Assembly: GCA_002269645.1 (NCBI GenBank) | Contig: NIVC01003040.1 | Coordinates: forward strand, 59,666-123,665 | Direction: 5' to 3' | DNA length: 64,000 nt | Source of the DNA: Macrostomum lignano | Taxonomy: Eukaryota | Shown: positions 5,223 through 57,059 of the stretch, piece by piece | How positions within the stretch are numbered: position 1 is the stretch's first letter | Layout: each line of letters opens with the position of its first letter | The notes under the pieces: model-generated | Told to the model about the DNA's origin: nothing | Databases searched by the model: none | What the model saw: the letters and a program-made list of their open reading frames with translations, nothing else | Translations under genes and position numbers: made by a program

Positions 5223-5223
<1 letters not shown>

Positions 5224-5339
5224 TTTCTTTTTTCTCTTATCCCAGCTTCACCTCCTTCTTTCATCTGCTCCCCTATTCTCAGAATTCTCTCCATGCATTT
5301 CTCCCATAGTCAGGTCTCTTCCCACTGTCCCAGCGGCAG

Positions 5340-37829: not shown

Positions 37830-38468
37830 GGTTCACCTGTTGAGACACCATTGGGTCACCTGTTGAGACACCGTGGGGTCACCTGTTAAGACACCGTGGG
37901 GTCACCTGTTGAGACACCGTGGGGTCACCTGTTGAGACACCGTGGGGTCACCTGTTGAGACACCATTGGGTCACCTGTTGAGACACCGTGGGGTCACCTG
38001 TTAAGACACCGTGGGGTCACCTGTTGAGACACCGTGGGGTCACCTGTTGAGACACCGTGGGGTCACCTGTTAAGACACCGTGGGGTCACCTGTTGAGACA
38101 CCGTGGGGTCACCTGTTGAGACACCGTGGGGTCACCTGTTGAGACACCATTGGGTCACCTGTTGAGACACCGTGGGGTCACCTGTTAAGACACCGTGGGG
38201 TCACCTGTTAAGACACCGTGGGGTCACCTGTTGAGACACCGTGGGGTCACCTGTTAAGACACCGTGGGGTCACCTGTTGAGACACCGTGGGGTCACCTGT
38301 TGAGACACCGTGGGGTCACCTGTTAAGACACCGTGGGGTCACCTGTTGAGACACCGTGGGGTCACCTGTTGAGACAGCAGGGGTCACCTGTTGAGACACC
38401 GTGGGGTCACCTGTTGAGACACCGTGGGGTCACCTGTTGAGACAGCAGGGGTCACCTGTTACGACACC
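37830..38468. repeat. 23-bp minisatellite (cctgttgagacaccgtggggtca), ~27 copies
   Basis: Period checked from 37834 to 37857; the array ends ~55 bp before the ALDH16 ATG. Confidence 0.95.
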
Positions 38469-38525: not shown

Positions 38526-40631
38526 ATGCCGACCGACCTGAAGCGCATCATGCAGTCCGCCAGCTACCCCGCCGATGTGGAGCAGAGTCTGGAGCCGCTG
38601 CTCCGTTGGCTGCGGGACACCCCCGGGCTTGGCGGTCAAGTTCGGCCGTTCCGCTCCGGACAGTTTGTCGGCGATACGGCGGCTGCCGCGACTCCGCTGG
38701 CCAGCCCCTGGAGTTGCTGGTCGGCGTCGGTGACCGGTGTTTCGGTGCCGGCCGAGGCCTCAGCGAATGCAGAGCCGCCAGCCGCATCGACTGGCGACCT
38801 CGCCGAGGCGCTGCGGCGGCTGCGCAAAATCGCGACTAACAGGCGGGAGCTGAGCAGTCTGGCCGAGATCTTTGCCACCGGCCGGGCGCCGGCCGACGTC
38901 GCAGCCGACCTAGATAGCATCGACGCTCTGCTGGCCGACGCTGTCGAGCTGCCGCCTTCCCGACCGCTGCCGTCCATCGAGCTGGCAGTCATCGGCGGGC
39001 CGCGGCCGCTGCTCGACTGTTTCCGGCGGCTGTTGGCCTGCCTGGCTTCCGGCTGCGGCCTCTGCTTGGCCACCGCTGGGCCCGCCGACCCCGCCGCCCT
39101 GCCCTGCTGCCTGTTCGCCGCCATGGCTGCCGAAGCCAACTGGCCCGCCGGTCGCCTGGAGTTCCTACCGGGCATCGGCGCCATCCCGCAGCAGGTCAGC
39201 AGACTGTGGGCGCCTGCGGCAGCGGAGCCGCTGCTGTCCGGGCAGCTGCCGAAAGCGCTGGAGGCTGCCGCCTTCCGCGCCTCGCCGTCAGCCGCCTCAT
39301 CTCTGTTCGTCATCGCTCCGCCCTGCGATTTGGGCGCCGCCGCCGACGATCTGGCGATGTCGCTCGCCGCCTGCAACGGCCAGCTGGCCGAGACGCCCAA
39401 GCGGCTGCTGCTGCAGGAGTCTCTGGCCGGCGATTTCCTCGCCCTGCTGTCCGAGCGGATGAGCCGCCTGCGCGCCTCCGACCGGCCGCTCGTCTGCCTG
39501 GACGCAGGGCCGCCGCTGTCCGCGAGCTCGTCCGGCACGGCCGCCGCTTTGGCCAACGCCATTGTTGAAGGCGCCTCGGTGGCCGCCGCAGCTGCTGCCG
39601 CTGTCGATTCCAAGTCGGTCGGCTTCATCGCGCCGACCGTCCTGACGGGGCCGCAGCCGTCCGACCGGCTGCTGCAGACGCCGCACGCCGGCCCGCTGGC
39701 TGTCGCTCTCGTCTTCCGCTCGGCTGCCGAGGCGCTGAAACTGGCGGCAGCTGGCGGGCTGCCCGCAGACTCCGTGACGCTGCACTGCCAGCGCTCCAGC
39801 CTGCTGTGGGAGCTCATCCCCGGGTTCTCGCCCGCCGCCTCAGTGTGGGTGAACTCCCGGCCCAGGCCGCATCCGCTGGAGCCCGAGCTGGGGCCCAGGT
39901 GCGATCTGGCCTGGACTCTGTCGCCTGCGGATGTCGAAGATGAAGCTGAGAGTCTGGAGGTGTCGGTCGGCATCTGCCCGCTTGCGTCCGCAGCCGCAGC
40001 CGCTGAAGCCGCCCTGGCCATCGGCCGGTCCGCCAGCCGAACGGCCCGCTCCGATGCGGCCGCCTGCCTGGCCGAACTCGCCGACCGCTGCCCGCGCCGG
40101 CTGCGCGCCAGCCTCCCGGTCAGACCAGACGAAATCGGCGCCGCGCGCCTGGCGCCCGCGGGGCCCGCGTTCCCCGGCCAGGCGGCCGTGCGCGCCGTTC
40201 CGCCTGCCGCCCTGGTCATCGACGCCGGGGTCGAGTCGGCACGGACGGCACGCCAACTGCTTCGATTGGTCGCCCTGGCCGTTGCTATGCGAGTTCCGGT
40301 TGCCGTGGCAACGACCGGCGCCTGGGCGCCCAAAGCTCTGCTCGGCCTGCCGCAGGCCTGCGCTCCCCACTTCGTGGCGACGTCGCCGGCTGAGGCAGCC
40401 GAACTTCGCGCCCGCCTGCTGGCAGCTCGGCCGGCTGCGCTCTGCCTGCTCGGCGGCAACCGCGCCGACTTCGCCGGCCACCTCGGCGGCTGGCGGTCAG
40501 GCGCTGCCGCTGGCCGCCGGCTGCTGTTCTGCCCGGACGACTCGGACTCGGCGCCCGAGTTGGACGAGCTGCGACTCTGCCTGTGCCGTCAGTCGGCCGT
40601 GTGGCTGCCGGCCAAGCACTCGCTGGCCTAG
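38526..40631 (+). CDS. ALDH16A1: ALDH16A1-like aldehyde dehydrogenase-fold protein, single exon, 701 aa, probably non-catalytic
   Basis: The N-terminus 'LKRIMQSASYPADVEQSLEPLLRWL' resembles the ALDH16 N-terminus. ALDH motifs: 'PLL...LASGC...A', 'KRLLLQES', 'GFIAPTVLTG', 'AGPLAVALVFRSAAEALKLA', 'VWVN'. A second degenerate ALDH-like half ends in 'VWLP', giving the ALDH16 1.5-domain architecture. Confidence 0.75.
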   Translation: MPTDLKRIMQSASYPADVEQSLEPLLRWLRDTPGLGGQVRPFRSGQFVGDTAAAATPLASPWSCWSASVTGVSVPAEASANAEPPAASTGDLAEALRRLRKIATNRRELSSLAEIFATGRAPADVAADLDSIDALLADAVELPPSRPLPSIELAVIGGPRPLLDCFRRLLACLASGCGLCLATAGPADPAALPCCLFAAMAAEANWPAGRLEFLPGIGAIPQQVSRLWAPAAAEPLLSGQLPKALEAAAFRASPSAASSLFVIAPPCDLGAAADDLAMSLAACNGQLAETPKRLLLQESLAGDFLALLSERMSRLRASDRPLVCLDAGPPLSASSSGTAAALANAIVEGASVAAAAAAAVDSKSVGFIAPTVLTGPQPSDRLLQTPHAGPLAVALVFRSAAEALKLAAAGGLPADSVTLHCQRSSLLWELIPGFSPAASVWVNSRPRPHPLEPELGPRCDLAWTLSPADVEDEAESLEVSVGICPLASAAAAAEAALAIGRSASRTARSDAAACLAELADRCPRRLRASLPVRPDEIGAARLAPAGPAFPGQAAVRAVPPAALVIDAGVESARTARQLLRLVALAVAMRVPVAVATTGAWAPKALLGLPQACAPHFVATSPAEAAELRARLLAARPAALCLLGGNRADFAGHLGGWRSGAAAGRRLLFCPDDSDSAPELDELRLCLCRQSAVWLPAKHSLA

Positions 40632-41286
40632 GCTTGACGGGGGATCGAACCAAGGACCTTTTTGATACTTACTAGTAATTGCAATATTCCGTACTGCTCA
40701 ATATCAGTGCCCCTCTGAAATTCGAGATTATCGCTTAATCTGTAATGGGGAATTAATCAGGGTAGGCAAAGTCAAAGGGGTCGGTCGCCCTCTAGTAAAC
40801 CGGAATGGCTGCTAAAATACCGCAGTCAGCAATGCTCGCAGTGCCTGATCGCTTCTAACATTATTTAGTATCTTTCTTCGCTCAATCATGCGCGCAATGC
40901 CTACTCGCATATATAGCTTTTATTCAGTAGTATGCTTTGCAAACTAGCAGGTATTTTCTATCGTTGAACTTTCAAATTTAATTTCGACGCCTATCAAATT
41001 TCTTCGCTAGTCTGATTTTAATTTTCTCAATTTTGATTTCAAATTCGCGCCAAATTAGAAAAAAAACATTATTTAATTACATTCAGTAAATTTTGATGCT
41101 GATGTACTCGTAATTTCCTATTGCGGCGTTCTTCCAAATATACTTGCAGTTGAAGTCCTTCTGGTTCTACTCTGTTATATATATTTATTTACCAATAACT
41201 GACTCGCGGATCAGCTTAGCAGCCGATGAAACCGGATTAAACAAATCCTTTGCTATGCGCCCCGCCATTCCAGCCCAGAAAATCTC

Positions 41287-44200
41287 ATGCCGTCACTGTC
41301 GCCGCTGCTGCTGCCGCTTGCTGCCCTGCTGCTGCTGCTGGCATCCACCGGGCCTCGGGCCGCCCACTCCGCGCCCGCAGCTGCCGGCGCCGCCCTCTAC
41401 CAGGCCTCGGATCACGTGACTCCGCTGAAATTCGATGACCTCCGGGCCGTCGTCTATTCTGGCGAGCGTCGGCGGCACTGGCTGCTGCAGCTGTACCACC
41501 GGTACTGCGGCCACTGCATCAACTTCGCGCCCACCTTCAAGCGGTTCGCCAGCGATGTTAAAGGTTTGTAATGGGTGCACACCTCATTCACTCTGCACAC
41601 CTCATTCACTCTGCACACCTCATTCACTCTGCACACCTCATTCACTCTGCACACCTCATTCACTCTGCACACCTCATTCACTCTGCACACCTCATTCACT
41701 CTGCACAAACATTCACTCTGCACAAACATTCACTCTGCACACCTCATTCACTCTGCACAAACATTCACTCTGCACAAACATTCACTCTGCACACCTCATT
41801 CACTCTGCACAAACATTCACTCTGCACAAACATTCACTCTGCAATCCCCATCCACTCTGCACTCCCCATCCACTCTGCACTCCCCATCCACTCTGCACTC
41901 CCCATCCACTCTGCACTCCCCATCCACTCTGCACTCCCCATCCACTCTGCACTCCCCATCCACTCTGCACACCCCATCCACTCTGCACTCCCCATCCACT
42001 CTGCACTCCCCATCCACTCTGCACTCCCCATCCACTCTGCACTCCCCATCCACTCTGCACTCCCCATCCACTCTGCAATCCCCATCCACTCTGCACTCCC
42101 CATCCACTCTGCAATCCCCATCCACTCTGCACTCCCCATCCACTCTGCAATCCCCATCCACTCTGCACTCCCCATCCACTCTGCACACCCATTCACTCTG
42201 CACTCCCCATCCACTCTGCAATCCCCATCCACTCTGCAATCCCCATCCACTCTGCACTCCCCATCCACTCTGCACACCCATCCACTCTGCACTCCCCATC
42301 CACTCTGCACTCCCCATCCACTCTGCACACCCATTCACTCTGCACTCCCCATCCACTCTGCACTCCCCATCCACTCTGCACTCCCCATCCACTCTGCACT
42401 CCCCATCCACTCTGCACTCCCCATCCACTCTGCACTCCCCATCCACTCTGCACACCCATCCACTCTGCACTCCCCATCCACTCTGCACTCCCCATCCACT
42501 CTGCACACCCATCCACTCTGCACTCCCCATCCACTCTGCACACCCATCCACTCTGCACTCCCCATCCACTCTGCACTCCCCATCCACTCTGCACACCCAT
42601 CCACTCTGCACTCCCCATCCACTCTGCACACCCATCCACTCTGCACTCCCCATCCACTCTGCACACCCATCCACTCTGCACTCCCCATCCACTCTGCACA
42701 CCCACCCGCATTCCCCCGCTTTCACTCTCCTGTTTATCCGCTCTGTTCCTCCGCCGCCCCAGGCTGGTCGCACACGGTGGGCCTGGCCGTGATCGACTCG
42801 GCCGATTTCGCCCAGGTCATGACGCACTACGGCCTGAACGGGGTGCCCAGCCTGCTGTTCATTCCCAGCAACACCAGCTGGGAGCAAAAGTACTTCTCTT
42901 TGCTGAATTCCGAGGCCAACTTGATGGATCAGCTGTTGAATCAGCTGCAGCCGTTTGTGCCTCAGCTGGTGCCTCTGCAGTCGGGGTGAGTTATTAAACC
43001 TTCATACTAGTCTTTGTTGCATCCTTAACTCACTTAGTTAAGAATATTTTGATTGGAAACCGTTGTTAAGAGTCTTTGTTGAATGTTTTCTTTGTTACTG
43101 ACTTTGTCGCTTGTATCCTCATGTAGTCCATTTTTGCGTCCTTTTTGGGTTGGAAAGCCTCATTTGGTCTTTGTTGCATCATCTGAAACCCTCATCTGGT
43201 CTTTGTTGCATCATCTCAAACCCTCATCTGGTCTTTGTTGCATCATCTGAAACCCTCATCTGATCTTTGTTGCATCATCTGAAACCCTCATCTGATCTTT
43301 GTTGCATCATCTGAAACCCTCATCTGGTCTTTGTTGCATCATCTGAAACCCTCATCTGGTCTTTGTTGCATCATCTGAAACCCTCATCTGGTCTTTGTTG
43401 CATCATCTGAAACCCTCATCTGGTCTTTGTTGCATCATCTAAAACCCTACAAAGCCACTGCGTCTTTGTTGCTTGAAATTTTTACCCCTTCTTTCTATTG
43501 CCACGTCAAGTCTTTGTCCTTACAGACCTAATTACTCACGCCTGGAATACCCCTTTTCCGCTCTCCCAGTGAGGCCGCCAACAGCCCGGCGCTCCTAGAA
43601 GAAGCCAGTCCGGGCCGCCTCTCCCGCCGGCTCATTCTGGACAGCCTGCCCAGCTTGAGTCTTCGCTGGCGGCTCAACGCCGGTCTGAGCGGCGGCGCGG
43701 TCCGCGTCAGCCGGGTTCCCGCAGCCGGCGGCGGCAGCGCGGCCGCGCTGGGCGAATCCGCCAGCATCGATGAGCTTCGCCGCCTCTTGGCGCCGCCGCT
43801 GCGACCGCCATCTGCCGTGGCGCCGCCGGCCGCTGCCCCAAGCGTGATGGCGAAGGTCGCCCAGCCGTCCGACTCTTCATCTTCTCATGGCGAGCTCCGT
43901 CCGCCGACGCTGGACGACCTCCGGTCGGGCATCATCCGGGCGCTCGTCTCGGACGCGGCCGCCGTCAGCCTGGACAAACCCGGCGTCTGGCCGGCTGTGC
44001 GCGACTTTGTCCGCCTGCTGAACTCGCACCTGTCCGCCAGGTCGCTTGAGCTCGGCCGCCTGCTCCGGCCGCTGGCCGCCTGGCTGCCTGAGGAGCCGCC
44101 GAGCCACGACCGCTGGCTACGCGCCCTGGCCGACGCCGGCTTCCCGACGCGCCCGCCCGACGCCTGGGTCTCCTGCCGCGGCTCCAAGCCCTTCCTGCGT

Positions 44201-44815
44201 GGCTACCCGTGCAGCCTTTGGCAGCTGTTCCACACCCTCACAGCCGTGCGCTTCGCCACCGCCGGCGCCTCCGGCCCGCCTGTGATGCCCGTCATGCGCC
44301 GCTTCATCATCGCCTGCTTCTCCTGCCGCTACTGCGCCGAGAACTTCGACAAAGGCACCGCCGGCATGGAGGCGGAGATCGGCGCCCAGCCGGCGCCAGG
44401 CGTCGAGCTGCTGTACCTGTGGCGGAAGCACAACGCCGTCAATAACCGGCTGAGCGGCGAGTCCTCTGACGACCCCGCCTATCCGAAGGCCCGGTTCCCG
44501 TCCGCCGCGCTGTGCTCCGAATGCGCCGAGGGTGCCGCCTCCGCGGACGCGAACGCCGCCGCATTCCTGCTTCGCTGGTACGGGCCGGGCGCCGGCTGGG
44601 CCAGCCATCCGGAAGGCGACAGCGACTTTGCCAAGCCGGCCATCAGCACCGTCGACATAATGGGCTTCTCCCGGCTCGACCTGGTCATTGTGGCGCTGTG
44701 CTTTGCCTGCGTGCTCAGCGTCCTTCTGGCCGTCTGGTGTCGCCTCAGCCGCAGCGGCCGCCGGCTGTGCAGGCGAGGCCTATCGCCGTTCCGACGCTCG
44801 CCCAGCCCCGTCTGA
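41287..44815 (+). CDS. QSOX: Quiescin sulfhydryl oxidase (QSOX); exons 41287-41563, 42763-42985, 43570-44815; ~581 aa
   Basis: Signal peptide; Trx1 'WLLQLYHRYCGHCINFAPTF'; HRR; ERV/ALR 'CRGSKPFLRGYPCSLWQLFHTL', 'CRYCAENF', 'LWRKHNAVNNRL', 'DPAYPKARFPSAALCSEC'; C-terminal TM. Intron phases 1 and 2 were checked and the total of 1746 nt is in frame. Confidence 0.92.
41575..42712. repeat. 18-bp minisatellite in QSOX intron 1 (acctcattcactctgcac changing to tccccatccactctgcac)
   Basis: Seen directly; the unit type switches near 41845. Confidence 0.95.
43160..43450. repeat. 32-bp minisatellite in QSOX intron 2 (ctcatctggtctttgttgcatcatctgaaacc), ~9 copies
   Basis: Seen directly. Confidence 0.93.
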
Positions 44816-44949
44816 GCGAGGCCGAAAGTCACACCGTCTCCGATAGGTTTTGGGACTCTGTGGTAGCCGAAAAATTGATGTTATTACATGTCTTTCTGCG
44901 CTTTTGAAGGGTGGCTTGCGATTTCTACTTAGGCTAGTTTACGAGTATT

Positions 44950-45238
44950 TATGACTTCCGGTTGTCATCCGTTGCTTGGATTCGTACGCATGGATTTAGT
45001 TGATAAAGGAGGGCTTCCTGTTTCCATCCCAGGTTGATAAATTAGGAGTTCCGGTTGCTATCCCAGTTGATAAATTAGGACTTCCGGTTGCTATCACAGT
45101 TGATTAAGGATGACTTCTGGTTGCCATCCCAGTTGGTAAAGGATGACTTCCGGTTGCCATCCCAGTTGATAAAAGATGACTTCCGGTTGCCATCCCAGTT
45201 GATAAAGGATAACTTCCGGTTGCCATCCCAGTTGATCC
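44950..45238. repeat. Degenerate ~33-bp tandem repeat (gacttccggttgccatcccagttgataaaggat)
   Basis: About 7 copies, becoming more regular towards the 3' end. Confidence 0.8.
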
Positions 45239-46199
45239 GCTCACTCATAAAGTAAGCTATGCGTTAGTTTTTTATCAATACAGAGTAATGAGAAGCTGAG
45301 TGATCTCTTAATTTTTGCTTTTAAATAGTTTTTCATAGTATTTCCAATGGCTTTTGAGGTGACAGGAAATTAAAGAAAGCCATGAACTTGTGGGCTTTTT
45401 TTATTAATTTGTTGTGCTCCGATGTTCTCTGGTTTGTCTCGGTTTTGTTGTGATGAGGCGAACCAATATTGAATATTTTACTACGAGCCCGTAGTCACTG
45501 AAAGCAGACAAAGATCACAGACACAGTAATGTAGCTTGGCTTGATGCTTTTCCTTTGCGCTGTTTAAATTCGTGCGTTGCTATTCTTGCAAATCAGTTGA
45601 AGAATCTCGCTGAGACTAAACTCAATGTATTCGAATGGCTATACGAGTCTACCGAATAACTCCGCGGTGAGTTCATTAATTGTTCAAATTTTGTTGTTTG
45701 TTGCTTATGCAGAGGTGGAATTGTCCGTGATATTGCATTTTCTATGATTAATGTGTGCTTCTACTTGTCTTCACTGTGGTAACTGTTGTCGCGTTTTCAG
45801 CTGGACTAATTGTTGTGCGAGTTCCAACCCTCTATCTGATACTTATGCTAATTGCACTTTTAAAAAGAGAATGTCACAAGCTTGCCAGAGATTTAAGACA
45901 AATGCATCAGATTTGAAATTTATCAATTGAAAAGTGTCTTAACTTCCTTCTTTTATCCTTTCGACCTCCTATTGGCATAAAATCGGAGTAAAAATGCATT
46001 ACACATTGTGCTTTTCTTAGCCTCAGCGCTGCCAATTAGGTACGAATTAAATTCAGTTTAAATGTAGGGAAGCAAAACAGAGAGGCCTTCTAGTATACAT
46101 GTACTGTTGTACTTGACGCTGCAGCAGCTGAGTCGCAGGTTCTTACAAGAGACATCATTGACAATTTCTACTCAGTTAACTAGGCCTACTTAGTCGGTT

Positions 46200-47520
46200 C
46201 ACATACCCCCCCCCCCCCGAGGTCGCTTTCCTTTTACTGGCTGTGGGGTATGGACTTTGGGATTACGGCACAGCAGTCTGTCAACCTCATCCCCCATTCG
46301 CTTTTCAGCGGCCTATGGAGTACAACTCGTACCAAGGTGCACCCACCGCGTCCGTTGATGCTGCTGGAACGCCAACCAAGGTTGGTACCGCGGCTCAACC
46401 GGACATCCGACACACCGGAACTTTCATTGCCTCTCACTCTAGTAACCCTGCCGCCACTCAGGGTCATACTGAAGTGGCTAGACAACAGGGTAGAGTGTGA
46501 TAAATAGGCAATTAGATAATAGCATGCACGGTGAGCAATTATTGAGGCCCTAGACAAACCTACTTGGAGCGTTCGAAGATTTTAAAGCTATTAATCCTAA
46601 TCGCCTATCGCCGGTCGGCGAGTTCTACCAGTCTTCTCCAATAGCCGCAGGTACAGTACAGGAAAATAAAGAACACGAGGGAACACAAACCGAAGATTTA
46701 GAGAGTGATAATCCTATATGATACAAACTGATAATTGGCTAGACGATTTAATTTGATTACTCAAGTTACAGGATTCAAGCAAATTCGCGACGCAGATAAT
46801 TAGACTGATGATAACGAATAGTAACGATTAATAATAATGATTATATTACGCACTGACAAGCGGATCTCAGCTTGAAGAAGAAGAAGGAGGCACCGAACAC
46901 AGGACCACGGAGAAAGACTCCTAACCCCTGGCCTAAGCCAAAACCTACTCTCAAACGAGAGCCCTGCCGAATCGACCGTTCAACGGAGTACCGACTAAAT
47001 TCTATCGGCACTGCCCTTCAGTGTAACACTGAGGCCCTCGGGGTCGAGGCCGCGTACTTGATCAGATCCGACAGTCTCTATCTAACCGCGCTTGATAGCG
47101 ACGACTTCAGACAGGAATTTGCCGTAGACGTTACGCCACAAGACTACTGCGGTTGGGCGGGAACAAAGATACGGACCGGGGTGATGAATTCAGGCGCCTC
47201 AAAGCGCGAACCAACAAGAGGAGAAAAATCGGGCCACCGGCCGGGAAGCTGGACAAGACAAAACCGGGGAAAGGGAGAGAGAAGGCGAGATCCGATTGCC
47301 AAATACACTTTCATTTATAGTCAGAGTCACAACCCCTCAAAACCCCCCTCAAGCCGGGTGGTGGTCGTCTGGCCGGCCGCTTGCTTAAGCCGAATTGCAC
47401 TGTGCCCGCGGCGCCGGGTAGAATTGAAACTTGCCGCGTGCCAGGGTCCAGGCCGGTTCTGATTGGCTGGCCGCGCCAAGCTGGGGTTCGCAGAAAAACT
47501 CAACCCTCCGCTGAGTCACA
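46200..47520 (-). mobile_element. Possible LTR-like retroelement remnant
   Basis: On the minus strand it begins TGTGACTCAG at 47520 and contains a TATAAAT box. It ends at a G12 polypurine tract followed by taTGTGA, like a PPT plus the first bases of a second LTR. No TSD or PBS was found. Confidence 0.35.
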
Positions 47521-47640
47521 AATGGCGTCTAACTTCTAACCTGTTTACGCAAAATTGATTCCAACTAACAAGGAAAAAGTACACCAAAACGTATGACTAA
47601 ACTAAAGCAAAATAACAATTCAATAACAATATAGAAACTA

Positions 47641-49530
47641 ATGCAGTCAATTTACAACAAAATACACGCAAAGATGCTCACACTACAAGAGGGTCCCACA
47701 TCTCTAAGAAGAGAGTCCGTAGCATCGCCCGCTTCCAGGAATTCCGCCGGCGCAAAGCGGAAGAACAGAGGAGAGCGGAAGCCGCCTCTTCTGCCGCCTC
47801 TGAGGAGGCTGCCGGCAACTCTGCGAATCCCGCGGAGAAGCCGTCATCCCACAAAGTAGCGGACTCCGTGCGTCGGCCGGAAGCTTCGGATGGCACCAAA
47901 GCTTTTGGTGCGGCTGGCTCCTCCCGCGGCAGGACTCCTGCTCGTGAGGAAACTCCCACGGCTGCAGACGGATCCAACGCGGGGGGCGCTGGCCAAACCA
48001 CGCGTCCGAAGCGCACCTATGCGGATATGGCCAAAAGGCAGCCGACCCTGATTATTCAAGGCCAGGAAACGTCCCTTTCAGCCGAACAGCTCGACCAAAT
48101 CTGGCGCAGGTTGGATTCCCACCTGGTCAAGATGGCTCTGAGCGGCACTGTGCTTAAAGTCCTGAAGACGAGCGTTGAGGACCAGACACTCCGCATCCAA
48201 CCCGCCGATAGCCAGTCTGGGCAGCAGCTCCTTGAGCTCCTGAAAGCCTTCAACTGGGATGCGGAGTTGGGTAAACTGTTCATATACAGGGAGGACGAGC
48301 GACCCCGGACACACCGGCACCGTGCCTGGATTCCGGCTCGCAGTTCCATCACCAACGCCGACGAGCTGCGCCGCCTTCTGTTGGCAACCAATCCGAAACT
48401 GCCGGCAAATGGCGTCGTAGTTCATGAGACCATCGCCAAGCCGGGTGAAGATGGTTTCACGGCAATCCTTGGACTGTCTGATAGCTGGATGCTCCGCTAC
48501 CCGGACATGTCTCATATTTCTGCCGGGCTGACACGGATCCAAATCTTCAGCTTTGAATCCGACGCCACCCGTCCACCGTCCCCGGTGAAGCGTAAGCGGG
48601 CGAGCGGGAGCTCTGCCGGGCCGAACCGCCCAGGAAAAAGAGCTCCTGTGGGTCACGACCCCTCCTACTCGTAGGACGTGGACCCCGTCAGGCACAAAAC
48701 CGCGAAAGCTGAAGCAACAGGCGGACATGGGTAGGGCTAGAAACCCACCCGAAACACTATCCGCTATGATTTGCCTCTACGCGCGAAACAGCTGCTGGAC
48801 ACCGCCAAGGTTCGCAACCGCAGCAACCCCCAGTCCAGTGTCACCTCTTCGGCTCCCTCGGAAAACCGGGTCGAGAATGCGGATGCTGCCCCGGTGGCGG
48901 CCCCGCCCTTGACCATGCAAACCATCCGGGAGGAGCCCATTGAACTGGAGCCATCAGCGAGGTGGGATGCAGCTCTCCTGCTCCACAACTCGCCTTGAGC
49001 CAGCAGAAAGCTGCGCGGTCTATCTGTGGAATTCCGGCAATGGCCATTCTGCAGCTTAACCTGCACCACTGCATCGTAGCATCGACCCACCTGGCACAGG
49101 TGGTGGACTTCGTAAAATTGGGCATTGTCCTTATTCAATAGCCTTGTACAAAGGTAAGATTCGGAATATCCCTGCTGGTTTTGACTGTTTTCAGTCAATT
49201 CGTGTCTAACCTTAAAGCTTGGTACAAACCGGAACTCTCTGACAGCGACCTCTGTGTCATTCAATCCAATCACATTATCACCAACCGCACGGTCATCATC
49301 GCCTCGATTTATATCCCTGCCGTTCCGCCTAACCTCGCCTTCCTCGTGGCCTACTGATCTAACCGCAAGTTTGAGCTGCTGGTGGCGGGCGAAATTAACG
49401 CCCACCGCATACACTGGGGCAGTAATACCTCCAACGGCAGAGGCAAGGAACTCCTTGCTTATATCTGCACCACCAATAATGAGTTTTGCAATATCGGTGG
49501 AACTCCTACCTTCGACAACGGCCGTTGGAT
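47641..49530 (+). mobile_element. Degenerate non-LTR retrotransposon (R1-like) 5' part: ORF1 plus AP endonuclease, truncated before RT
   Basis: ORF1 47868-48674 has 'RTYADMAK...TNPKLP', similar to R1-type gag-like ORF1. From 49040 the APE motifs are 'ILQLNLHHC', 'LIQ*P', 'IASIYIP', 'GEINAHRIHWGSNTSNGRGKELLAYI', 'NIGGTPTF', interrupted by stops and frameshifts. Confidence 0.8.
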
Positions 49531-52500
49531 GTGTCCGCAGGCATACAAAAACTGGTTTGAACTAACACACAAGCCCCTTTTTTAGCATACCTTTTTTAGC
49601 GGACATTTGACATTTGAGGATTTACTTATTGAGGTTCGAATCTCAGCTATCTTTTCTGAAGCTTTGGTGTCACCCCAACTCCTTTTGAGCTTTGACATCG
49701 CATAGACCAAAATTCCATGCACTCACTTTACTCTCTGGTCCTAACAAGGGCCAAGCCCAAGGCACGGTAGAAGCTGCGCGCATGTCTTACAAAGACGAGG
49801 AAGTCAGAGCCTCTGTGCTTACCTGTGCTCTCGAGGATCTTGCTCAGGAGAGGCGTCGGGTGTGGTTAGCATTGACATCCCAGTCTCGCATGAATGAAAG
49901 AAGCCTCTTCTCGACGTCAAAAGTCACTATTGCTATCAATCTTGCGTACCTTCCCAGTAAAGTTTCCTAAGGGAAAGCATTAATTATCTCTTGCACTTTC
50001 CAGATACGCCAGCTGTGAAATTGAGCACCTCCGGCTGCAATCAGAGCAGCGAGTTCTCGAGCTCGTCTAACTGCACCAAAGCCATCGACTGAGTGGCGTC
50101 GCCGGCTCTCAGCGCCTACAGCAGAACAAATTCCGGCCCTAGCTGGTGATGCGGGGCTGATTTGAGCCCTGCATCTCTGCACCAGCGATCTCAATGCGTT
50201 CTCCCTGTCAGTGGACGGAGTCACATCGGTGCCGTTCTCTGTGACCAATTTCAGCTGCAATGCCTTCAGCGGCAGATCAATAATAGTGAATTTGCAGGCT
50301 GGCAAAATTGAACCTAATCATAAGCGAGTTCGAAATTTATGGCTATTGATAGCAGCTGCTAACGCAAGGACAACAATGAGGAACTCGAAGATCTTCTACG
50401 CAATTGTAAACGACCTGCAACCTGAAGACTGAATTTATTTTCAGCATCTTCACCAGCAATACGTTCAACATACATTTGGTGTTAAAAAGCTGGAAAATAT
50501 TTTTCTCGTAATTAAAAACCTAATGCTTGACTTTCAATTGTTCACTTTCAAGTGTTCCAAGATTAAAAACGAAGATTCATCAAGATCTATAAATCTGGGT
50601 TCGAGTTCTGGATTATCTGGAGCCACTTGACAAATTTCAAATGAAATGAGAAAATCTGTTTTTTAGCCACTAATCTCTCTACAAGTGTATTTTGCGACTA
50701 TAAACTCTTAAATATAGGATTCAATACTTGGTTTTGAGTAGTCTTGTAACACGATATATATTTCTCGTGCATTAAATGACTCCAGCCAATAGGCGATCAC
50801 GAGCCATTTAAGCACGCTTTTAGCGTTTAATGCACGCTTTTACACATTTATATCGTGTTATAATTTTCTATCTTAGAATTGCGCCAGAGTTTCACTATTC
50901 TAGAACATTCTGTAATTCTTTTTAGGGAATTATGCGGAGTTATTTACGTTTAGAGGTCAATCTGCCCGGACGGATTCTGATTTACGATCACTCAGCCAAC
51001 CTGAGTCCAGCTAGTCATCTCGGGCTCGTCAAATCAGAAAATTTGAGGAGAGTTATTATAAACTGGCTGTCATAAATCTACGAGTATTTATAGCGGCCGC
51101 TCGGCTCGCCTCCCTCACAAAACGTTCTTCCTCCACGTACGTCCCCCCGGATCAAAAACATCTGAGATCAGCGAGTACAGCAGTCGTCAAATACGAGCTA
51201 AGAGCAGCAGCAGCATCCATAAAATTATCCATGGCGACACCCCTGAGCATCAGTATCCTGTTTGGATATCTCAGTCACTGTGGACTTCCTGGTTACGGGC
51301 AGCTTGACCCTGATTGGTTGGGCGAGAGGCCTCCTTTGACTTGCTCTATTGGGTGCACATCTTGACTAACTCCTTTTCCGGTAGCTGGATTGGATTTGCA
51401 CTTTTACTTATTTGTTTATATGGAGTTCAGTAGCTTTGGGACATTGACGCTATTTTTTGAGAATTTGATAGAACTTCTAATGAATGAAATAAAAAGCTAC
51501 TCAATCAAACTAAGAATGGTGCATTCACTGCAGAGACTACTGACAAAATTGAGTTCAGTAGTTGATTTTCGCGCTGTCGCGAATAGCAAAATTTTCGCAG
51601 TTTTTATGGCCACATAGGTAGTTAATGAGTGGCCCATCTTGTGTATATATGATCTTTGCTGTGACCTGAGAAAGCCAATTTCTGTTTCGCAATGCTGACC
51701 AAGATATCGAGTGGCTTATTCACTGAGGCGAAGGTCGCAGTGGACCAAAAGAAATTCAGTTCCTAGTCATTCAACCCATCAATAAGTTAAATTCCGAAAT
51801 CACACCAATCCCGCTTGTTCCGCAGCAGGAATGAATCATTTATAATTAGCTTAGAGACCGAATTAGGCTCTGAATATTGTACTGCATCAGCGCTATCTGG
51901 CGACGAGCTGACTCGGTCCAGGCCAATTTCGTGCAGATCGATACACAAAGTATTTTCTGGGAATTCAATAATGTATTCTAATAGCACACTCAGTGGTGTA
52001 TGGAGACTCGCCAGAACAAGAACTCCCCGCTAAAAGTCCTACCTGCTGCCCCTGCATGGCCAGTGCGATATAGCAGTATCCATGATATGCAGTAGTATCC
52101 CTTATGTCGACTATGACTTCGAGATAGACAGCTAAAAGACACAAATTAGCATTTGTTAAAGTCTCGAGTAATATGAATTTTTCTAGCGCGGGCTTTTCTT
52201 CACCGAATAGGTAGGTCTACGGCCAACCCCTTTTAGCGCTTAAATGCGTTCTCTAGAACAACACGCTCGTACTAAATGCGCTAGCGGTTACGTTCTTTAC
52301 CGGCCTCTCCTGTTCAGTTCTAAGAAAATTGATCGTATCTACTAGCGTCCTAAATCAGTTTAAAACCAAAACCATGCATTTGTCATCTGTTCTCTGTTCT
52401 GCATTCAGTAGTCCGTAGTCTGCATACAACTCGTGCATTACAATAAATAAATGAGGTATAGTTAGCACTACGGCGAGTTTGGCGATTTTTCACGAGTTGG

Positions 52501-53065
52501 TTACACAAAAACGGGTCAGAAGTGTGATAAATTAGATAATAACATTTTACTAGTTTTTATTTTAGATCCTCTAAAGATTTCTATGTGTTCGCGTGGTATT
52601 TGTTAGTGCAAACATGGCAAGCTATAGCTGCTTTCATAATTCGGTCAATTCCATTACAATAGCTTATAATCGTTCGTTCACGATCTACGAGTAATACAAT
52701 TTCATGATATTACATTTTGAATTCCCTACTCCAATTTATAAACTTAAGTTCTGTCTATGGGCGTTAGCTCTGACGCTGTCGTTCAGTCGCCTACGATTCT
52801 TCGTTAACTTGTAATGCATTTCCTTTTCGGTTTTAAGCAGACGTATGAATTTAACTTGATAAATTAATCTACTAAAGTACACGAATACTGGCCATTTCAC
52901 CAGCATATAACAGCTATTCTTTTTACGTAAGTAGAGCCTAACACGACATGTGACTTTACTAAAACCGCCATCTGCAAAACATGCTGTGAACAAGTCGTCA
53001 ACTATACTCGCGCGTGCGTTCAACGTGAACGTGTGTAATATATTTAAAGACTTTAAATACCATGT

Positions 53066-53325
53066 GCCATCAAGCTGGCTGGTAGTCATCGGCGGGCCGC
53101 GGCCGCTGCTCGATTAATTGTTTCCGGCGGCTGTTGGCCTGTCTGGCTTCCGGCTGCGGCCTCTGCTTGGCCACCGCTGGGCCCGCCGACCCCGCCGCCT
53201 TGCCCTGCTGCCTGTTCGCCGCCATGGCTGGCGAAGCCAACTGGCCCACCGGTCGCCTGGAATTCCTACCGGGCATCGGCGCCATCCCGCAGCGGGTCAG
53301 CAGTCGTCTTCCGCTCGGCCGCTGA
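53066..53325 (+). pseudogene. ALDH16A1-like fragment: duplicate of 38977-39202 joined to 39709-39726
   Basis: Near-identical nucleotide match to the ALDH16 gene, with an inserted ttaa at ~53114 that shifts the frame; there is no start or end. Confidence 0.9.
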
Positions 53326-53548
53326 TTAATTCCTCAATATTGCTTTCAAATCCACGCCAAACTATAAAACATGAGTTAATTACATTCATGCTGATGTATA
53401 ATGTCCTTGTGAAATGCCATCCCGGTTCTAATCTGTTTTATATTTTTATTTACCAATAAATAACTCTTGGATCAAGCTTAGCAGCCGATGAAACCGGAAT
53501 AAACAAATCCTTTGCTATGCGCCCCGCCATTCCAGCCCAGAAAATCTC

Positions 53549-54730
53549 ATGCCGTCACTGTCGCCGCTCCTGATGCCGCTTGCTGCCCTGCTGCTGCTGC
53601 TGGCATCCACCGGACCTCGGGCCGCCCACTCCGTGCCCGCAGCTGCCGGCGCCCCGTCAGCGAACAGCGAATCCGCCAGCATCGATGAGCTTCGCCGCCT
53701 CTTGGCGCTGCTGCGACCGCCGTCTGCCGTGGCGCCGCCGGCCGCTGCCCCAAGCGTGATGGCGAAGGTCGCCAGGACGTCAGACTCTCCATCTTCTCAT
53801 GGCGAGCTCCGTCCGCCGACGCTGGACGACCTCCGGTCGGGCATCATCCGGGCGCTCGTCTCGGACGCGGCCGCCGTCAGCCTGGACAAACCCGGCGTCT
53901 GGCCGGCTGTGCGCGACTTTGTCCGCCTGCTGAACTCGCACCTGTCCGCCAGGTCGCTTGAGCTCGGCCGCCTGCTCCGGCCGCTGGCCGCCTGGCTGCC
54001 TGAGGAGCCGCCGAGCCACGACCGCTGGCTGCGCGCCCTGGCCGACGCCGGCTTCCCGACGCGCCCGCCCGACGCCTGGGTCTCCTGCCGCGGCTCCAAG
54101 CCCTTCCTGCGTGGCTACCCGTGCAGCCTTTGGCAGCTGTTCCACACCCTCACAGCCGTGCGCTTCGCCACCGCCGGCGCCTCCGGCCCGCCTGTGATGC
54201 CCGTCATGCGCCGCTTCATCATCGCCTGCTTCTCCTGCCGCTACTGCGCCGAGAACTTCGACAAAGGCACCGCCGGCATGGAGGCGGAGATCGGCGCCCA
54301 GCCGGCGCCAGGCGTCGAGCTGCTTTACCTGTGGCGGAGGCACAACGCCGTCAATAAACGGCTGAGCGGCGAGTCCTCGGACGACCCCGCCTATCCGAAG
54401 GCCCGGTTCCCGTCCGCCGCGCTGTGCTCCGAATGCGCCGAGGGTGCCGCCTCCGCGGACGCGAACGCCGCCGCATTCCTGCTTCGCTGGTACGGGCCGG
54501 GCGCCGGCTGGGCCAGCCATCCGGAAGGCGGCAGCGACTTTGTCATGCCGGCCATCAGCACCGTCGACATAATGGGCTTCTTCCGGGTCGACCTGGTCAT
54601 TGTGGCGCTCTGCTTTGCCTGTGCGCTTGACGCCCTGTTGGTCGTCTGGTGTCGCCTCAGCCATAGCGCCCGCCGGCTGTGCAGGCGAGACCTATCGCCG
54701 TTCCGGCGCTCGCCCATCCCCGTCTTCTGA
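53549..54730 (+). CDS. QSOX-derived thioredoxin-less sulfhydryl oxidase (signal peptide-HRR-ERV/ALR-TM), intact single-exon ORF, 393 aa
   Basis: Matches QSOX exon 1 up to 41391, then QSOX exon 3 from 43752, in frame. It retains CRYC, the FAD-binding W..H/HN motifs and the C-terminal CxxC (CSEC). Confidence 0.85.
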   Translation: MPSLSPLLMPLAALLLLLASTGPRAAHSVPAAAGAPSANSESASIDELRRLLALLRPPSAVAPPAAAPSVMAKVARTSDSPSSHGELRPPTLDDLRSGIIRALVSDAAAVSLDKPGVWPAVRDFVRLLNSHLSARSLELGRLLRPLAAWLPEEPPSHDRWLRALADAGFPTRPPDAWVSCRGSKPFLRGYPCSLWQLFHTLTAVRFATAGASGPPVMPVMRRFIIACFSCRYCAENFDKGTAGMEAEIGAQPAPGVELLYLWRRHNAVNKRLSGESSDDPAYPKARFPSAALCSECAEGAASADANAAAFLLRWYGPGAGWASHPEGGSDFVMPAISTVDIMGFFRVDLVIVALCFACALDALLVVWCRLSHSARRLCRRDLSPFRRSPIPVF

Positions 54731-57059
54731 CTTATTTAATAAGGTAATGTGTACTTCTACTTGTCTTCACTGTGGTCTGTTGTTGCATTTTCAGCTGGAG
54801 TAATTGTTGTTTGAGTTCCAATTTCCAACTCTATTTGATACTTATGCTAATTGTACTTTAAAAAGAGAATTTCCACAAGCTTGGCAGAGATGTAAGACCG
54901 GGGCATCAGATTTGAAAATTTATCAATTAAAATTGTGAAAGTGTCTTAATTTCCTTAGCTTCTTATTTAAAAAATCCTGCTACGTTTTATATGTTTTGCG
55001 TGATATTTTTGGTGCAAACATGTATCCTGCTTGAATAAATAACGTTTAATTTCCTTAAAAATAGAGCTTTACCTTCATGATTTAATAAAAATGTATGTTT
55101 TTGAATGTAGTAATAGATATTTTCTATTCGAATTTTTCCATTCTTCTATTTTACACAATCAGGTCATACACTACACGACATGTCTTTGTTAAAACCGCCA
55201 TCTGCAAAACACGGTTTAAATTTTTGAGCTGTGAACATGGCCGGCATGAACGTGTGTAGTACTTATTATCATAGAATTTAAATGCTATGCGTATGTAGTG
55301 AATTTTCCATTCTGGCCAGTAGTTTGTTTGTTTAAAAATCGAATAGCCTAAATTAGGACTGAGTAAAAATACAGTTACGTTACAGTAGGCCTATTGATCC
55401 AGGGGTTTGATCTGCATAGGCTTACCGACAAGTGACAATACCGAAGTTATAGGGCCTGCCTACCCTAGTCTAGATATTGAAACTTAATCGATACAAACAA
55501 AACTAGCTAGAATAAAATTGGGATAAGGATGATATGCACTAAGTGAGTGCTATTTGGTCTATCTGTACTCTAATCATCTAATGCAATCAGCAGAATGCAG
55601 ATAGCTGGTACAATCATTATCAATCAATGATATAAAATCAGGCAGTCAGGTAGACCTACATATTGCATGCAAGTACATTTTTAAATACTTGATAAAATTT
55701 TCTCATGTCATTCTGAATATTTTTGAAAATATTTTATAATCTGTGATCATTAGTACTATTATGAGTATACTAGGCCTATGCCTAATATTATTTAATGCAT
55801 AGGCCTAGGCCTAGCCACTATAGAATAAGATTTCTATATATTAAATTTACTGATATTTTTTATGTTATGATTAATTTAATGTGCATATTTAAGATAGCCA
55901 TAGCCTATAGGCATAGTTCTAAATCAGTTTGTGCAAAAAAAGTAGATTTTAACCTCTTTAAATTAGGCCTAGCTATTTTAGTTCCTAGGTCTAGGATGTC
56001 ATTTTTTACTAAAAATTCAAAGCAAATTTAGCTTAGCCTTAGCTTAGGATAGAGCAAAGCAGGGTAGGACAAGGCAATCTCTGGCAATGTAGAAGGCAAG
56101 GCAAGGTAAAAGCCATAGTTTGGATTATATATTAGTGTATGCCAGGTTTAATGTTGTAAAATTGATGAGACCTTGTTTATACGCTGGGTTTTCATGCCAA
56201 TATAAAAAATTATCTTTGGCACAATATTTCTACTATGTTATGCATACCAAGATATAAACTGATTTATGCCAAAAAATGATAAATACCTTGTTGTATTTGT
56301 ATAGGCTTACTAAGAAATCTTAGTATATGTGTTGCTTTCCAAACTATGGGGCAGAAGCAAGGGTAGGGATAGGTAGGGCTAGGTCAGAGTCTTAGAGATA
56401 GGGTAGGATAAAGAGCAACAAAATGGTTGATTAACATTAAAGCCAAGATATATTATCTTTTTTGGCTAATACTATAATACAATATTGATATAGAAAAAAT
56501 ACTAAATAACTGAATAAGATCTTAGGACTAAAATTAGAATACTTCAAGGTACCTAAGTAGATTTTTAGTTTGAGATTCAGGGAATCAAGACATTGAGGCA
56601 GATTTTGGATCTAAGTTTTGTGGCATCAACCCTATTGGAATAAGTCTTCATTTTCAGATGCTATCCAGTGTGTTTAAGAAATTTAGCTGGTATAGGTATG
56701 AGGAGATATATATATGCACAGGTGTGCTTATATGTATGCTATGCGTATGTGTGGTGCACATGTGAGCATTGTGCATAGCCTATACTCCACTCAAAAAATG
56801 AAAAGGCAAATATACAAAACAAGAAAAGTATAATCTTACCATTCAACATTTTTAGCCAAAAAGTTTTATTATTTATTAATTACTTTTATCTTAGGCCTTT
56901 GCAATAAATACTTAGCTACCAAAATTTATCATTACTTACAAATGTAAATTTAGTAAGGCCTAATTAAGATTTAGTATATTCTGATTACTTGCAATAAAAT
57001 TTGTTAAACTACATCAATGATTTCTAGAATAACTATGGAATATAGTCAAATACTAGCAA

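Follow-up and report, generated by a model that had tools for sequence, protein, structure and literature searches.

A thioredoxin-less partial duplicate of QSOX beside its parent gene in Macrostomum lignano

Results and Discussion

We analysed a window of 64,000 nucleotides of the Macrostomum lignano genome (contig NIVC01003040.1, labelled L002; L001 and L003 are other contigs of the same assembly), which carries a QSOX gene and, downstream of it on the same strand, a short QSOX paralogue ORF (53549-54730, + strand) without the thioredoxin (Trx) domain. We read this short copy as a genuine partial tandem duplicate, specific to the lineage, of the M. lignano QSOX gene, and give about even odds to the full reading, in which its core is gene-converted and its reading frame is maintained under weak constraint. 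The function of the short copy is unproven.

Structure of the parent gene and of the short copy

The parent QSOX gene (41287-44815, + strand) is composed of the exons 41287-41563, 42763-42985, and 43570-44815, and in its splice model the borders are GT..AG and the frame is open over 581 aa. The encoded protein matches rat and mouse QSOX1 in the PDB and is laid out as Trx1 with the CGHC motif, linker, pseudo-Erv, Erv, and transmembrane (TM) segment; Pfam identified Thioredoxin (PF00085, residues 62-133) and Evr1_Alr. For Trx2 (PF18108), no match was found in the parent even at E ≤ 10, and PF22220 (QSOX_pErv) gave a weak match, below the cut-off (E = 0.01), to the parental segment identical to the short copy. 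In the AF2 model of the 581-aa parent, residues 20-272 have a pLDDT below 50, and the alignment is shallow there. The parent introns consist largely of minisatellites, as found by the tandem-repeat scan.

The short ORF runs from ATG to TGA (393 aa plus stop) and encodes, in order, a signal peptide, a disordered linker, the pseudo-Erv (HRR) and Erv/ALR domains, a TM helix, and a short tail. The signal-peptide-coding piece (53549-53653, +) is a copy of parental 41287-41391 with 4 substitutions, 2 amino-acid changes, and a retained hydrophobic core. It is followed by a 13-nt filler without parental counterpart (53654-53666, +), which together with the next 2 nt encodes PSANS and preserves the frame, and then by the copy of exon 3 (53667-54730, +), which corresponds to parental exon 3 from 43752 to the stop. 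Coherently, the self-BLAST of the window aligned 53424-53653 to 41163-41391 (94.3%) and 53667-54725 to 43752-44813 (96.6%, E = 0). The parental interval skipped at the junction is 41392-43751 (2360 bp); on the splice model, it begins within exon 1, takes in the CGHC-coding remainder of that exon together with exon 2 and both introns, and extends 182 nt into exon 3.

The preliminary description of this ORF, made from the sequence alone, had proposed the same anatomy: a signal peptide joined through a filler to the pseudo-Erv/Erv and TM parts, without Trx. This agrees with the ORF, the self-BLAST, and the Pfam result. Its claim that 2360 bp including the CGHC Trx1 domain are gone while the frame stays open to 393 aa is borne out by the self-BLAST and the splice model, and its in-frame internal loss at the DNA level is confirmed, with breakpoints within exons and a filler that keeps the frame. 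The ERV/ALR motifs it listed are all present in the translation, as CRYC, GYPCSLWQLFH, LWRRHNAVN, and CSEC.

Pfam analysis of the 393-aa protein returned Evr1_Alr alone (PF04777, residues 192-287, E = 2.5e-11, 44.2 bits with a cut-off of 27.6), and no match to Thioredoxin (PF00085) was found in it. By definition the QSOX family needs both Trx and Erv (PMC3616962). The short protein shares with its parent the signal peptide, the pseudo-Erv (HRR), the Erv/ALR domain with the FAD-proximal CRYC, the distal CSEC, and the C-terminal TM anchor, whereas it lacks the QSOX-defining Trx1 with its CGHC and most of the Trx-Erv linker. None of the 26 invariant positions in an alignment of 35 QSOX sequences has changed in it, and its CRYC lines up with the CxxC of rat and human QSOX1. 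The sole other CxxC is CSEC, counterpart of the human distal disulfide C509-C512, which is reported to lie ~27 Å from the active site on the opposite face (PMC3401233). There is no Cys between the signal peptide and the pseudo-Erv.

The AF2 model of the short protein is confident at residues ~88-320 and for a helix at 346-381, with a pLDDT above 90 for the helices of residues 92-166 (pseudo-Erv). In Foldseek, the model reached a TM score of 0.80-0.82 to the human QSOX1 HRR-Erv fragment (3LLK/3LLI) over ~240 residues, i.e. nearly the whole fragment; phmmer gave E = 9e-28 to 3LLI, and the identity to the human fragment is ~28%. As modelled, the pseudo-Erv would be packed on the Erv domain as a pseudo-dimer. 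Erv2 and ALR were only weak structural matches (Foldseek E about 1).

Candidate Trx-less homologues elsewhere were also considered and rejected. The Erv-only or HRR-Erv matches in the databases start at arbitrary internal Met residues and lack signal peptides; in appearance, these are gene calls on the last exon rather than true Trx-less paralogues. Rice “QSOX-like 1”, considered as a precedent, is a normal Trx1 plus Erv QSOX.

Age of the copy and probable gene conversion

The short copy predates the recent genome multiplication of M. lignano. All short copies have in common fixed type-specific differences, of which 19 lie in exon 3 (18 of the fixed differences being in the TM/tail part) and further ones in the signal peptide and the promoter. 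Between the parent and the non-converted pieces the divergence is 6-10%, versus ~1% between subgenomes.

Divergence from the parent is unevenly distributed along the copy of exon 3. The middle 735 nt, which encode the pseudo-Erv/Erv core, are ~99.3% identical to the parent, and the differences cluster at the 5' end and in the TM/tail part, the latter being ~10% diverged. Of the 35 differences between parent and copy, the middle 731 columns contain only 5, against an expectation of 24 (p = 3.5e-11), and the dS between short copy and parent is 0.016 in the middle versus 0.14-0.25 at the 3' end. The HRR-Erv core is far closer to the parent than are the other pieces of the duplicate, and judging from this pattern it has most likely been held near-identical to the parent by gene conversion. 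With a core so close to the parent (~99.3% identity), most likely for this reason, the retained motifs carry no information on selection. The homogenisation of the core with the parent was missed in the preliminary description.

More generally, a partial duplicate in a young polyploid can seem functional when its frame is kept open by gene conversion and a high GC content, and motif retention in such duplicates is no evidence of selection.

Selection on the short reading frame

The alternative that survives best, to which we give somewhat less than an even chance, is that the short copy is a non-functional relic: a drifting Trx-less partial duplicate, whose RNA, if any, would be transcriptional noise or mis-mapped parental reads. 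On this reading, the frame would be open owing to the GC-rich sequence with its few stop-prone codons, to the overwriting of the core by gene conversion, and to triplet slippage, which favours indels of 3n nucleotides.

Several results fit a relic. The preliminary description had suggested computing dN/dS against the parent: the values are relaxed (about 0.4-0.65) and not significantly different from neutrality, both between short copies (0.65; 9 N : 5 S) and for short versus full copies (0.41-0.58), while among full copies dN/dS is 0.12-0.36. The subgenome divergence of the short ORF (1.2%) is that of the non-coding flanks (0.8-1.7%). The L001 haplotype has replaced an Arg that is invariant in 35 homologues, and shows a clustered complex change with a 6-nt deletion; the TM segment of the short copy has also gained an Asp. 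The absence of stops is uninformative because, at 71% GC, its probability under neutrality is 0.57-0.76; a 294-aa antisense ORF is open as well. Furthermore, two of the in-frame indels of the short ORF sit in triplet-like repeats, the product is predicted by analogy with human fragments to be inert to thiols alone (see below), and an aldehyde dehydrogenase (Aldedh) fragment from the same duplication is clearly dead.

Other results argue against a relic. The three indels within the short ORF (3, 3, and 6 nt) are all in frame, as is the junction. Zero frameshifting indels are present in ~430 nt of non-converted coding sequence with 32 substitutions, whereas for 52 substitutions in the duplicated non-coding pieces there are 16 gaps (~0.3 gaps per substitution), of which only 1/16 is a multiple of three (15/16 are not), although these control pieces are AT-rich and possibly more indel-prone than the ORF, and gene conversion would erase indels in the core too. 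Moreover, the short copy has retained its promoter-proximal 78 nt, signal peptide, and stop, its TM segment is still hydrophobic, and transcript-derived gene models exist at all three contigs. The evidence on selection cuts both ways and is equivocal; we infer that the reading frame is maintained and that the amino-acid constraint is weak.

Transcription

The short locus had been presented as a new gene, which is overstated: transcript-derived GenBank models already cover it, at each of the contigs L001, L002, and L003. The annotation of this assembly is wholly RNA-derived (PMC5730564). Model P0002 (353 aa, L001) contains a 14-nt gap without GT/AG borders, placed exactly over the private block of L001, and model P0001 jumps from the full gene into the 3' part of the short copy. 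We infer that the short copy is transcribed, because the annotation is transcript-based and these two odd models are best explained by RNAs with a short-type 3' end. Two of the GenBank models here, of 353 aa and 626 aa, are products of mapping artefacts and describe the gene wrongly. A genomic frameshift in the L001 copy, suggested by the 353-aa model, was rejected, the genomic ORF being intact at 391 aa. In the supplements of the M. lignano papers and the full-text literature searched, we found no mention of the gene IDs or of “sulfhydryl oxidase/QSOX”.

Predicted biochemistry and comparison with known systems

The short ORF would give rise to a type-I membrane-anchored protein on the lumenal or extracellular side, an FAD-binding “oxidative engine” made of pseudo-Erv and Erv. 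It would have lost the Trx1 CxxC that takes electrons from the substrate, and would have no Erv-type shuttle disulfide.

The closest reference is the human QSOX1 HRR-Erv fragment (3LLI/3LLK; the “SAQ” of Zheng et al. 2012, PMC3401233), which has the same pseudo-Erv plus Erv content. Engineered HsQSOX1b fragments without Trx still fold and bind FAD; they oxidise TCEP, whereas DTT and reduced RNase are not oxidised (PMC3401233). This likeness predicts FAD binding and O2 reduction, and no direct thiol oxidation: the product would reduce O2 once CRYC is reduced, and alone would probably be unable to oxidise protein or small thiols. The expectation in the preliminary description that the product would oxidise proteins poorly on its own is in line with the loss of DTT and reduced-RNase oxidase activity in the Trx1-less human fragments (PMC3401233). 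The short gene differs from the human fragment in being natural, with its own promoter copy, a signal peptide, a disordered N-terminal arm of ~65 residues, and a membrane anchor.

If the product is inert to thiols alone, its activity would need a Trx-fold donor in trans, i.e. a PDI-family protein or the Trx1 of the parent. Absent such a donor, it would be a weakly selected or regulatory by-product. The pairing in trans with PDI/Trx proteins, or the modulation of full-length QSOX, is speculation. The fuller form of this idea, a “split QSOX”, in which an expressed and selected membrane-anchored engine that recently lost its Trx domain and is kept up to date by gene conversion from its parent is fed in trans by a PDI-family protein or by the Trx1 of its neighbour, appears to us unlikely. 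Fungal ER Erv2 works with PDI, and by analogy a short protein with a separate Trx-fold partner would work alike; a “split QSOX”, if true, would be an animal counterpart of the fungal Erv2-PDI pair.

Very unlikely is the variant put forward in the preliminary description, a small-thiol oxidase that acts alone in the secretory pathway and produces H2O2. Erv2 and ALR are examples of stand-alone Erv enzymes, albeit weak structural matches here, and the Erv active-site CxxC and all the invariant Erv columns of the short protein are intact. Stand-alone Erv/ALR enzymes are homodimers with a flexible shuttle disulfide. The short protein shares with Erv2p, Erv1p, ALR/GFER, and viral pB119L the Erv four-helix FAD-binding fold and the active-site CxxC, but, as modelled, it would be an intramolecular pseudo-dimer, with the covalently linked pseudo-Erv as second “subunit”, rather than an Erv homodimer, and it lacks a shuttle: no Cys pair is present in its disordered N-terminal arm, which has no Cys at all. 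The role as a small-thiol H2O2 source also goes against the results with the Trx1-less human QSOX1b fragments, fully active on TCEP and with no detectable activity on DTT or reduced RNase (PMC3401233).

The short copy is an ordinary young partial duplicate. With gene-converted partial tandem duplicates it has in common the position beside the parent, the internal truncation, the mosaic identity, and the relaxed dN/dS; it differs from them in that frame, signal peptide, and anchor are preserved and a complete secretory-pathway protein is encoded. If made and maintained, this protein would be a naturally occurring version of the laboratory-made HRR-Erv fragment of QSOX, a test case of whether the QSOX oxidative engine is usable without a tethered Trx, and a new protein architecture that arose through a single in-frame deletion in a tandem duplicate.

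Origin of the duplicated block

The counterpart of the ~7-kb parental block 38974-45949, lying 14 kb downstream, is a patchwork of four pieces that spans 1.9 kb and had escaped the preliminary description. The first piece is the Aldedh relic (53067-53303, +), which derives from the interior (38974-39202) of the upstream ORF with a partial aldehyde-dehydrogenase-family match (38526-40631, +); it has two out-of-frame indels with respect to the parent and is non-coding here. The second comprises promoter and signal peptide: the copy of the upstream region and 5' UTR (53326-53548, +; parental 41018-41286) is nearly identical to the parent in its proximal ~78 nt and 79-80% identical in its distal part. 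The third is exon 3. The fourth is a 3' flank (54745-54956, +; parental 45749-45949; ~84-86% identity, 7 small gaps), which now adjoins the stop codon of the short ORF. In the 7-kb spacer, the ORFs 46872-47462, 47868-48674, and 48764-49414 gave no Pfam match.

This arrangement would be produced by a tandem duplication of the QSOX block followed by deletions or template switching. The internal loss between the second and third pieces joins the signal peptide, in frame, to exon 3 at its pseudo-Erv/Erv/TM part. A processed retrocopy is excluded, because the block carries the parental upstream region with the promoter as well as part of the upstream gene, the stop is not followed by a poly(A) tract, and the breakpoints lie within exon 1 and exon 3, with a 13-nt filler, and not at splice sites.

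Patchworks of non-contiguous gene pieces are typical of capture by transposable elements. For the origin alone, we consider it quite improbable that the four pieces were assembled in such a way, by a Pack-type DNA transposon or a Helitron-like element, or that they derive from the retrocopy of an aberrant transcript. The patchwork itself would fit capture, as would the 29-nt, 76%-complementary inverted repeat (45975/52810) that flanks the 6.8-kb spacer between the parent and copy blocks, and the genome is more than half repetitive, with 21% LTR retrotransposon (PMC5730564). However, the inverted repeat is probably due to chance, the search around 53067-54956 yielded neither convincing terminal inverted repeats nor a convincing target-site duplication, the pieces lie next to the parent and keep its order and orientation, and the block was found once per locus in the sequence searched. 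The retrocopy variant also conflicts with the included promoter, the missing poly(A), and the breakpoints inside exons.

Recurrence of the junction among contigs

The database search for sister species returned no Macrostomum relative besides M. lignano. Within the assembly, a 33-mer spanning the junction, unique to the short gene, is exact in L001, L002 (the window), and L003. The preliminary description had missed the recurrence on the two further contigs. Over at least 3.7 kb in this region, L003 matches the window with 100% identity, which leaves only two independent haplotypes, while L001 shows 0.8-1.7% divergence from the window and, in the flanks (surrounding 8 kb), many indels. The short ORF is open in both haplotypes.

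About 70% of the assembly lies in 3-copy paralogous blocks, and its copy numbers suffer from redundancy and errors (PMC10733133). It is nonetheless barely credible that a collapsed or chimeric join in this repetitive polyploid PacBio assembly made a false deletion junction: the assembly's redundancy and the identity of the window with L003 over several kb near the copy could suggest such an artefact, but the same junction lies in the clearly diverged L001, and the 19 fixed exon 3 differences from all parent copies could not be yielded by a mis-join of parental reads. The junction is thus not the misassembly that the preliminary description had named as a possible refutation, being exact on three contigs and in two haplotypes. 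The gene order QSOX-full, QSOX-short, Rad51, SNF2 is found in L001 and L003, and the window aligns to the Rad51 region of L001.

Structure of the short QSOX-derived gene

The window forms the terminal 64 kb of contig NIVC01003040.1 of the Macrostomum lignano assembly GCA_002269645.1. The short ORF at 53549-54730 (+) was found by ORF search and translated into 393 aa. Its parent is the full QSOX gene at 41287-44815 (+), for which a splice model with exons 41287-41563, 42763-42985, and 43570-44815 and GT..AG borders gives an open frame of 581 aa, matched in size and domains by transcript-derived GenBank models of 583-585 aa. Self-BLAST of the window returned two matches on the + strand, one between copy 53424-53653 and parental 41163-41391 (94.3%) and one between copy 53667-54725 and parental 43752-44813 (96.6%), with 13 nt between them lacking a parental match. 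Pfam detected Thioredoxin and Evr1_Alr in the parent and Evr1_Alr alone in the short protein. Read with the splice model, this means that the 2,360-bp gap takes out the CGHC Trx1, both introns, exon 2, and 182 nt of exon 3. The preliminary description, in which the signal peptide is joined to exon 3 with loss of Trx1, was thus correct. Viruses or virus-like elements have no part in this finding.

Assembly check, haplotypes, and age of the duplication

The 33-mer spanning the junction has an exact match in two further contigs of the same assembly, NIVC01000406.1 (L001) and NIVC01000301.1 (L003), and both carry the order QSOX-full, a spacer of ~8-10 kb, QSOX-short, Rad51, and SNF2; the L001 Rad51 region aligns with the window. 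Three paralogous subgenomes make up the DV1 genome, with ~70% of the assembly in three-copy blocks and a SNP divergence of ~2.2% genome-wide and 1.1% in CDS (PMC10733133). Since L001 differs from the window around the short gene by 0.8-1.7% substitutions and many indels, it is an independent witness of the junction, and an assembly artefact is extremely improbable.

Window 51000-54730 and L003 20452-24182 show 100% identity across at least 3.7 kb, so we counted two independent short-gene haplotypes rather than three. The parent exon 3 differs between the same two contigs at 19/1,062 sites; this combination would reflect mosaic divergence of the subgenomes or else partly redundant contigs.

In exon 3, 19 fixed differences separate all short from all full copies, with more in the promoter and signal peptide, and the non-converted pieces of the duplicate are 6-10% diverged from the parent. 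This indicates that the duplication is several-fold older than the subgenome split.

Patchwork origin of the duplicate

The rearrangement is bigger and more broken up than initially described: a parental block of ~7 kb is represented by four collinear pieces inside 1.9 kb, which implies three internal losses rather than one. The first piece (parental 38974-39202, copy 53067-53303) is an inner fragment of the upstream Aldedh-family ORF, a dead relic with two out-of-frame indels. It is followed by the upstream region and signal peptide (parental 41018-41391, copy 53326-53653), exon 3 (parental 43752-44815, copy 53667-54730), and the 3' flank (parental 45749-45949, copy 54745-54956; ~84-86% identity).

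Much of the parental DNA missing from the copy is minisatellite, namely an 18-bp × 63 array (41576-42703) and a 32-bp × 9 array (43153-43448) in the introns and a 33-bp × 7 array past the stop, in the QSOX 3' region (44998-45236). The length difference may thus partly reflect later array expansion in the parent. A 23-bp × 20 array (38000-38468) lies upstream of the Aldedh-like ORF, and array lengths vary among the paralogous contigs.

Near the coding junction, the two parental breakpoints sit in GC-rich sequence of similar kind that codes for PAA(A/G)G, a setting that would fit illegitimate recombination or template switching with filler. Terminal repeats and a target-site duplication, as signs of transposon capture, were looked for around the duplicate and not found. 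A processed retrocopy is excluded, as the copy includes the promoter and the breakpoints lie inside exons.

Probable gene conversion of the core

Parent-versus-copy differences in the alignment of exon 3 from full and short copies are strongly clustered: only 5/35 fall in the middle 731 columns, versus 24 expected (p = 3.5e-11), and one stretch of 294 nt, the longest, has no difference at all (p = 0.00015). Synonymous divergence rises from 0.016 in the middle to 0.14-0.25 in the last ~200 nt. One variant is common to the L001 full and short copies only, and in the L003 full copy, the 5' cluster and three more sites have short-type states. The pattern is most simply explained by recurrent gene conversion over the pseudo-Erv (helix-rich region, HRR)/Erv core, possibly in both directions. 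It follows that the presence of CRYC, GYPCSLWQLFH, LWRRHNAVN, and CSEC in the short gene does not show that selection has kept them there.

Between L003 12633-13691 and window 43754-44815, the short-type states lie at alignment columns 109-124, 714, 866, and 878 and include amino-acid changes. Either the truncated copy donated sequence to the L003 full QSOX by gene conversion, or these states would be ancestral.

Selection on the short ORF

The evidence for selection is mixed. The dN/dS comparison suggested in the preliminary description gave 0.12-0.36 among full copies, 0.41-0.58 when full and short copies were compared, and 0.65 (9 N : 5 S) for one short haplotype against the other; the values involving short copies do not depart significantly from neutral. 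The between-subgenome divergence of the short ORF (1.2%) is the same as that of its flanks. In the L001 haplotype, an Arg found in all 35 QSOX homologues is replaced, and there is a clustered change that includes a 6-nt deletion. An Asp was gained in the transmembrane (TM) segment, which is still hydrophobic. Moreover, at 71% GC only ~1.7-2.3% of random substitutions make stops, so a neutral frame is expected to stay open (P = 0.57-0.76). A 294-aa antisense ORF (53780-54664, −) is likewise open within the short gene, as are similar ones within the parent; all of them stem from the 71% GC, and open frames are cheap at this locus.

In favour of constraint, the junction is in frame and the indels within the short ORF (3, 3, and 6 nt) are all multiples of three, whereas the duplicated non-coding pieces have 16 gaps per 52 substitutions, with 1/16 a multiple of three. 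In the non-converted part of the coding sequence (~430 nt), there are 32 substitutions and two gaps, each of 3 nt. The neutral chance of zero frameshifts is ~0.005-0.15, depending on the indel rate assumed. This signal is suggestive only, because the controls are AT-rich and two in-frame indels lie in triplet-like repeats.

On balance, the chances are about even that the copy is a gene that is transcribed, has had its frame maintained, and serves some function. That it is instead a relic in drift, its frame held open by gene conversion and GC content, is a serious possibility, if somewhat short of an even one.

Transcription and GenBank models

The assembly annotation was built entirely from RNA (StringTie/TACO on RNA-seq, BLAT-mapped de novo transcripts, TBONE, and TransDecoder; PMC5730564), and models are present at all three contigs. 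The short gene is already in the databases, as "hypothetical protein / Sulfhydryl oxidase".

The L001 model (P0002, 353 aa; within L001 10001-11176) corresponds to L001 10001-11076 less 14 nt with non-GT/AG borders, and thereby loses the TM anchor; the genomic short ORF of L001 is intact (391 aa). The omitted 14 nt coincide exactly with a block private to L001, the pattern left when a transcript from a different copy is aligned with a gap. The L003 model (P0001, 626 aa; L003 10001-24182) follows the full gene to CSEC and then skips ~10 kb to enter the short copy at VELLYLW, repeating 41 codons and finishing in the TM and tail of the short type. Such a jump is unnecessary for a transcript whose 3' end is full-type, so this model hints at short-type RNA. 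Both models are artefacts (a fusion across ~10 kb and a 14-nt omission), and they suggest the existence of RNAs with short-type sequence. No expression table naming these genes was found in the papers searched.

Predicted product and comparison with known families

The AF2 model of the short protein (35-sequence alignment, mean pLDDT 76.9) has a signal-peptide helix at residues 8-19, low confidence at 20-88, high confidence at ~88-320, and a long helix at 346-381 corresponding to the TM anchor. The top Foldseek matches were 3LLK/3LLI ("Sulfhydryl Oxidase Fragment of Human QSOX1"; target-normalised TM 0.80-0.82 over ~240 of 241-251 residues), followed by full-length mouse, rat, and trypanosome QSOX, with Erv2, ALR, and Erv1 weak (E ~1); the sequence search concurred (3LLI, E = 9e-28). 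The short protein is thus the natural equivalent of the human HRR-Erv fragment, extended by a signal peptide, a disordered arm, and an anchor.

HsQSOX1b variants without Trx1 wholly lose oxidase activity on DTT and reduced RNase, and retain full TCEP oxidase activity and bound FAD; folding needs the HRR (Zheng et al. 2012, PMC3401233). By analogy, electrons could pass from CRYC to FAD and O2 in the short protein, which by itself would be unable to draw them from thiol substrates. The loss of reduced-RNase activity agrees with the earlier proposal of a product poor at oxidising proteins alone. The proposed H2O2-yielding oxidation of small thiols is disfavoured, given the lost DTT oxidation and an N-terminal arm without any Cys to serve as an Erv-type shuttle. 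Any catalytic role would then need a Trx-fold donor in trans.

QSOX is defined by Trx and Erv domains together (PMC3616962), and the short protein, lacking Trx, is a QSOX-derived pseudo-Erv/Erv protein not to be filed as QSOX. Nor is it a typical stand-alone Erv oxidase, as it has neither their homodimer nor their shuttle arrangement. Among the database matches and literature searched, we found no described natural precedent for a Trx-less architecture: Erv-only or HRR-Erv-only matches resemble gene calls of a last exon, and rice QSOXL1 is an ordinary QSOX. We conclude that the feature is real and its architecture a new arrangement, and that the gene is young, lineage-specific, and weakly constrained.

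Other features of the locus and window

A second Trx-fold domain is usual in metazoan QSOXs. In the parent, Trx1 and pseudo-Erv/Erv match mammalian QSOX1, and the second Trx-fold domain is without a match: the ~105 residues between Trx1 and pseudo-Erv (145-250) are low-complexity, PF18108 did not match the parent even at E ≤ 10, and AF2 was uninformative for this segment.

A 1.2-kb stretch (46496-47687), holding most of the ORF 46872-47462 (no Pfam match), is missing from L001, probably because the subgenomes differ there by an insertion/deletion polymorphism. Two spacer ORFs, also without Pfam matches, lie at 47868-48674 (+, 268 aa; also on L003 at 17318-18124) and 48764-49414 (−, 216 aa). 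Elsewhere, the window contains ORFs with Cys-loop ligand-gated channel domains (33489-34820, +) and a UBA domain (29335-30450, +), two related arrays of ~15-bp period 2 kb apart (14044-14683 and 16273-16575), and a strongly skewed region with several overlapping ORFs of 460-660 aa (4000-8400), probably repeats.
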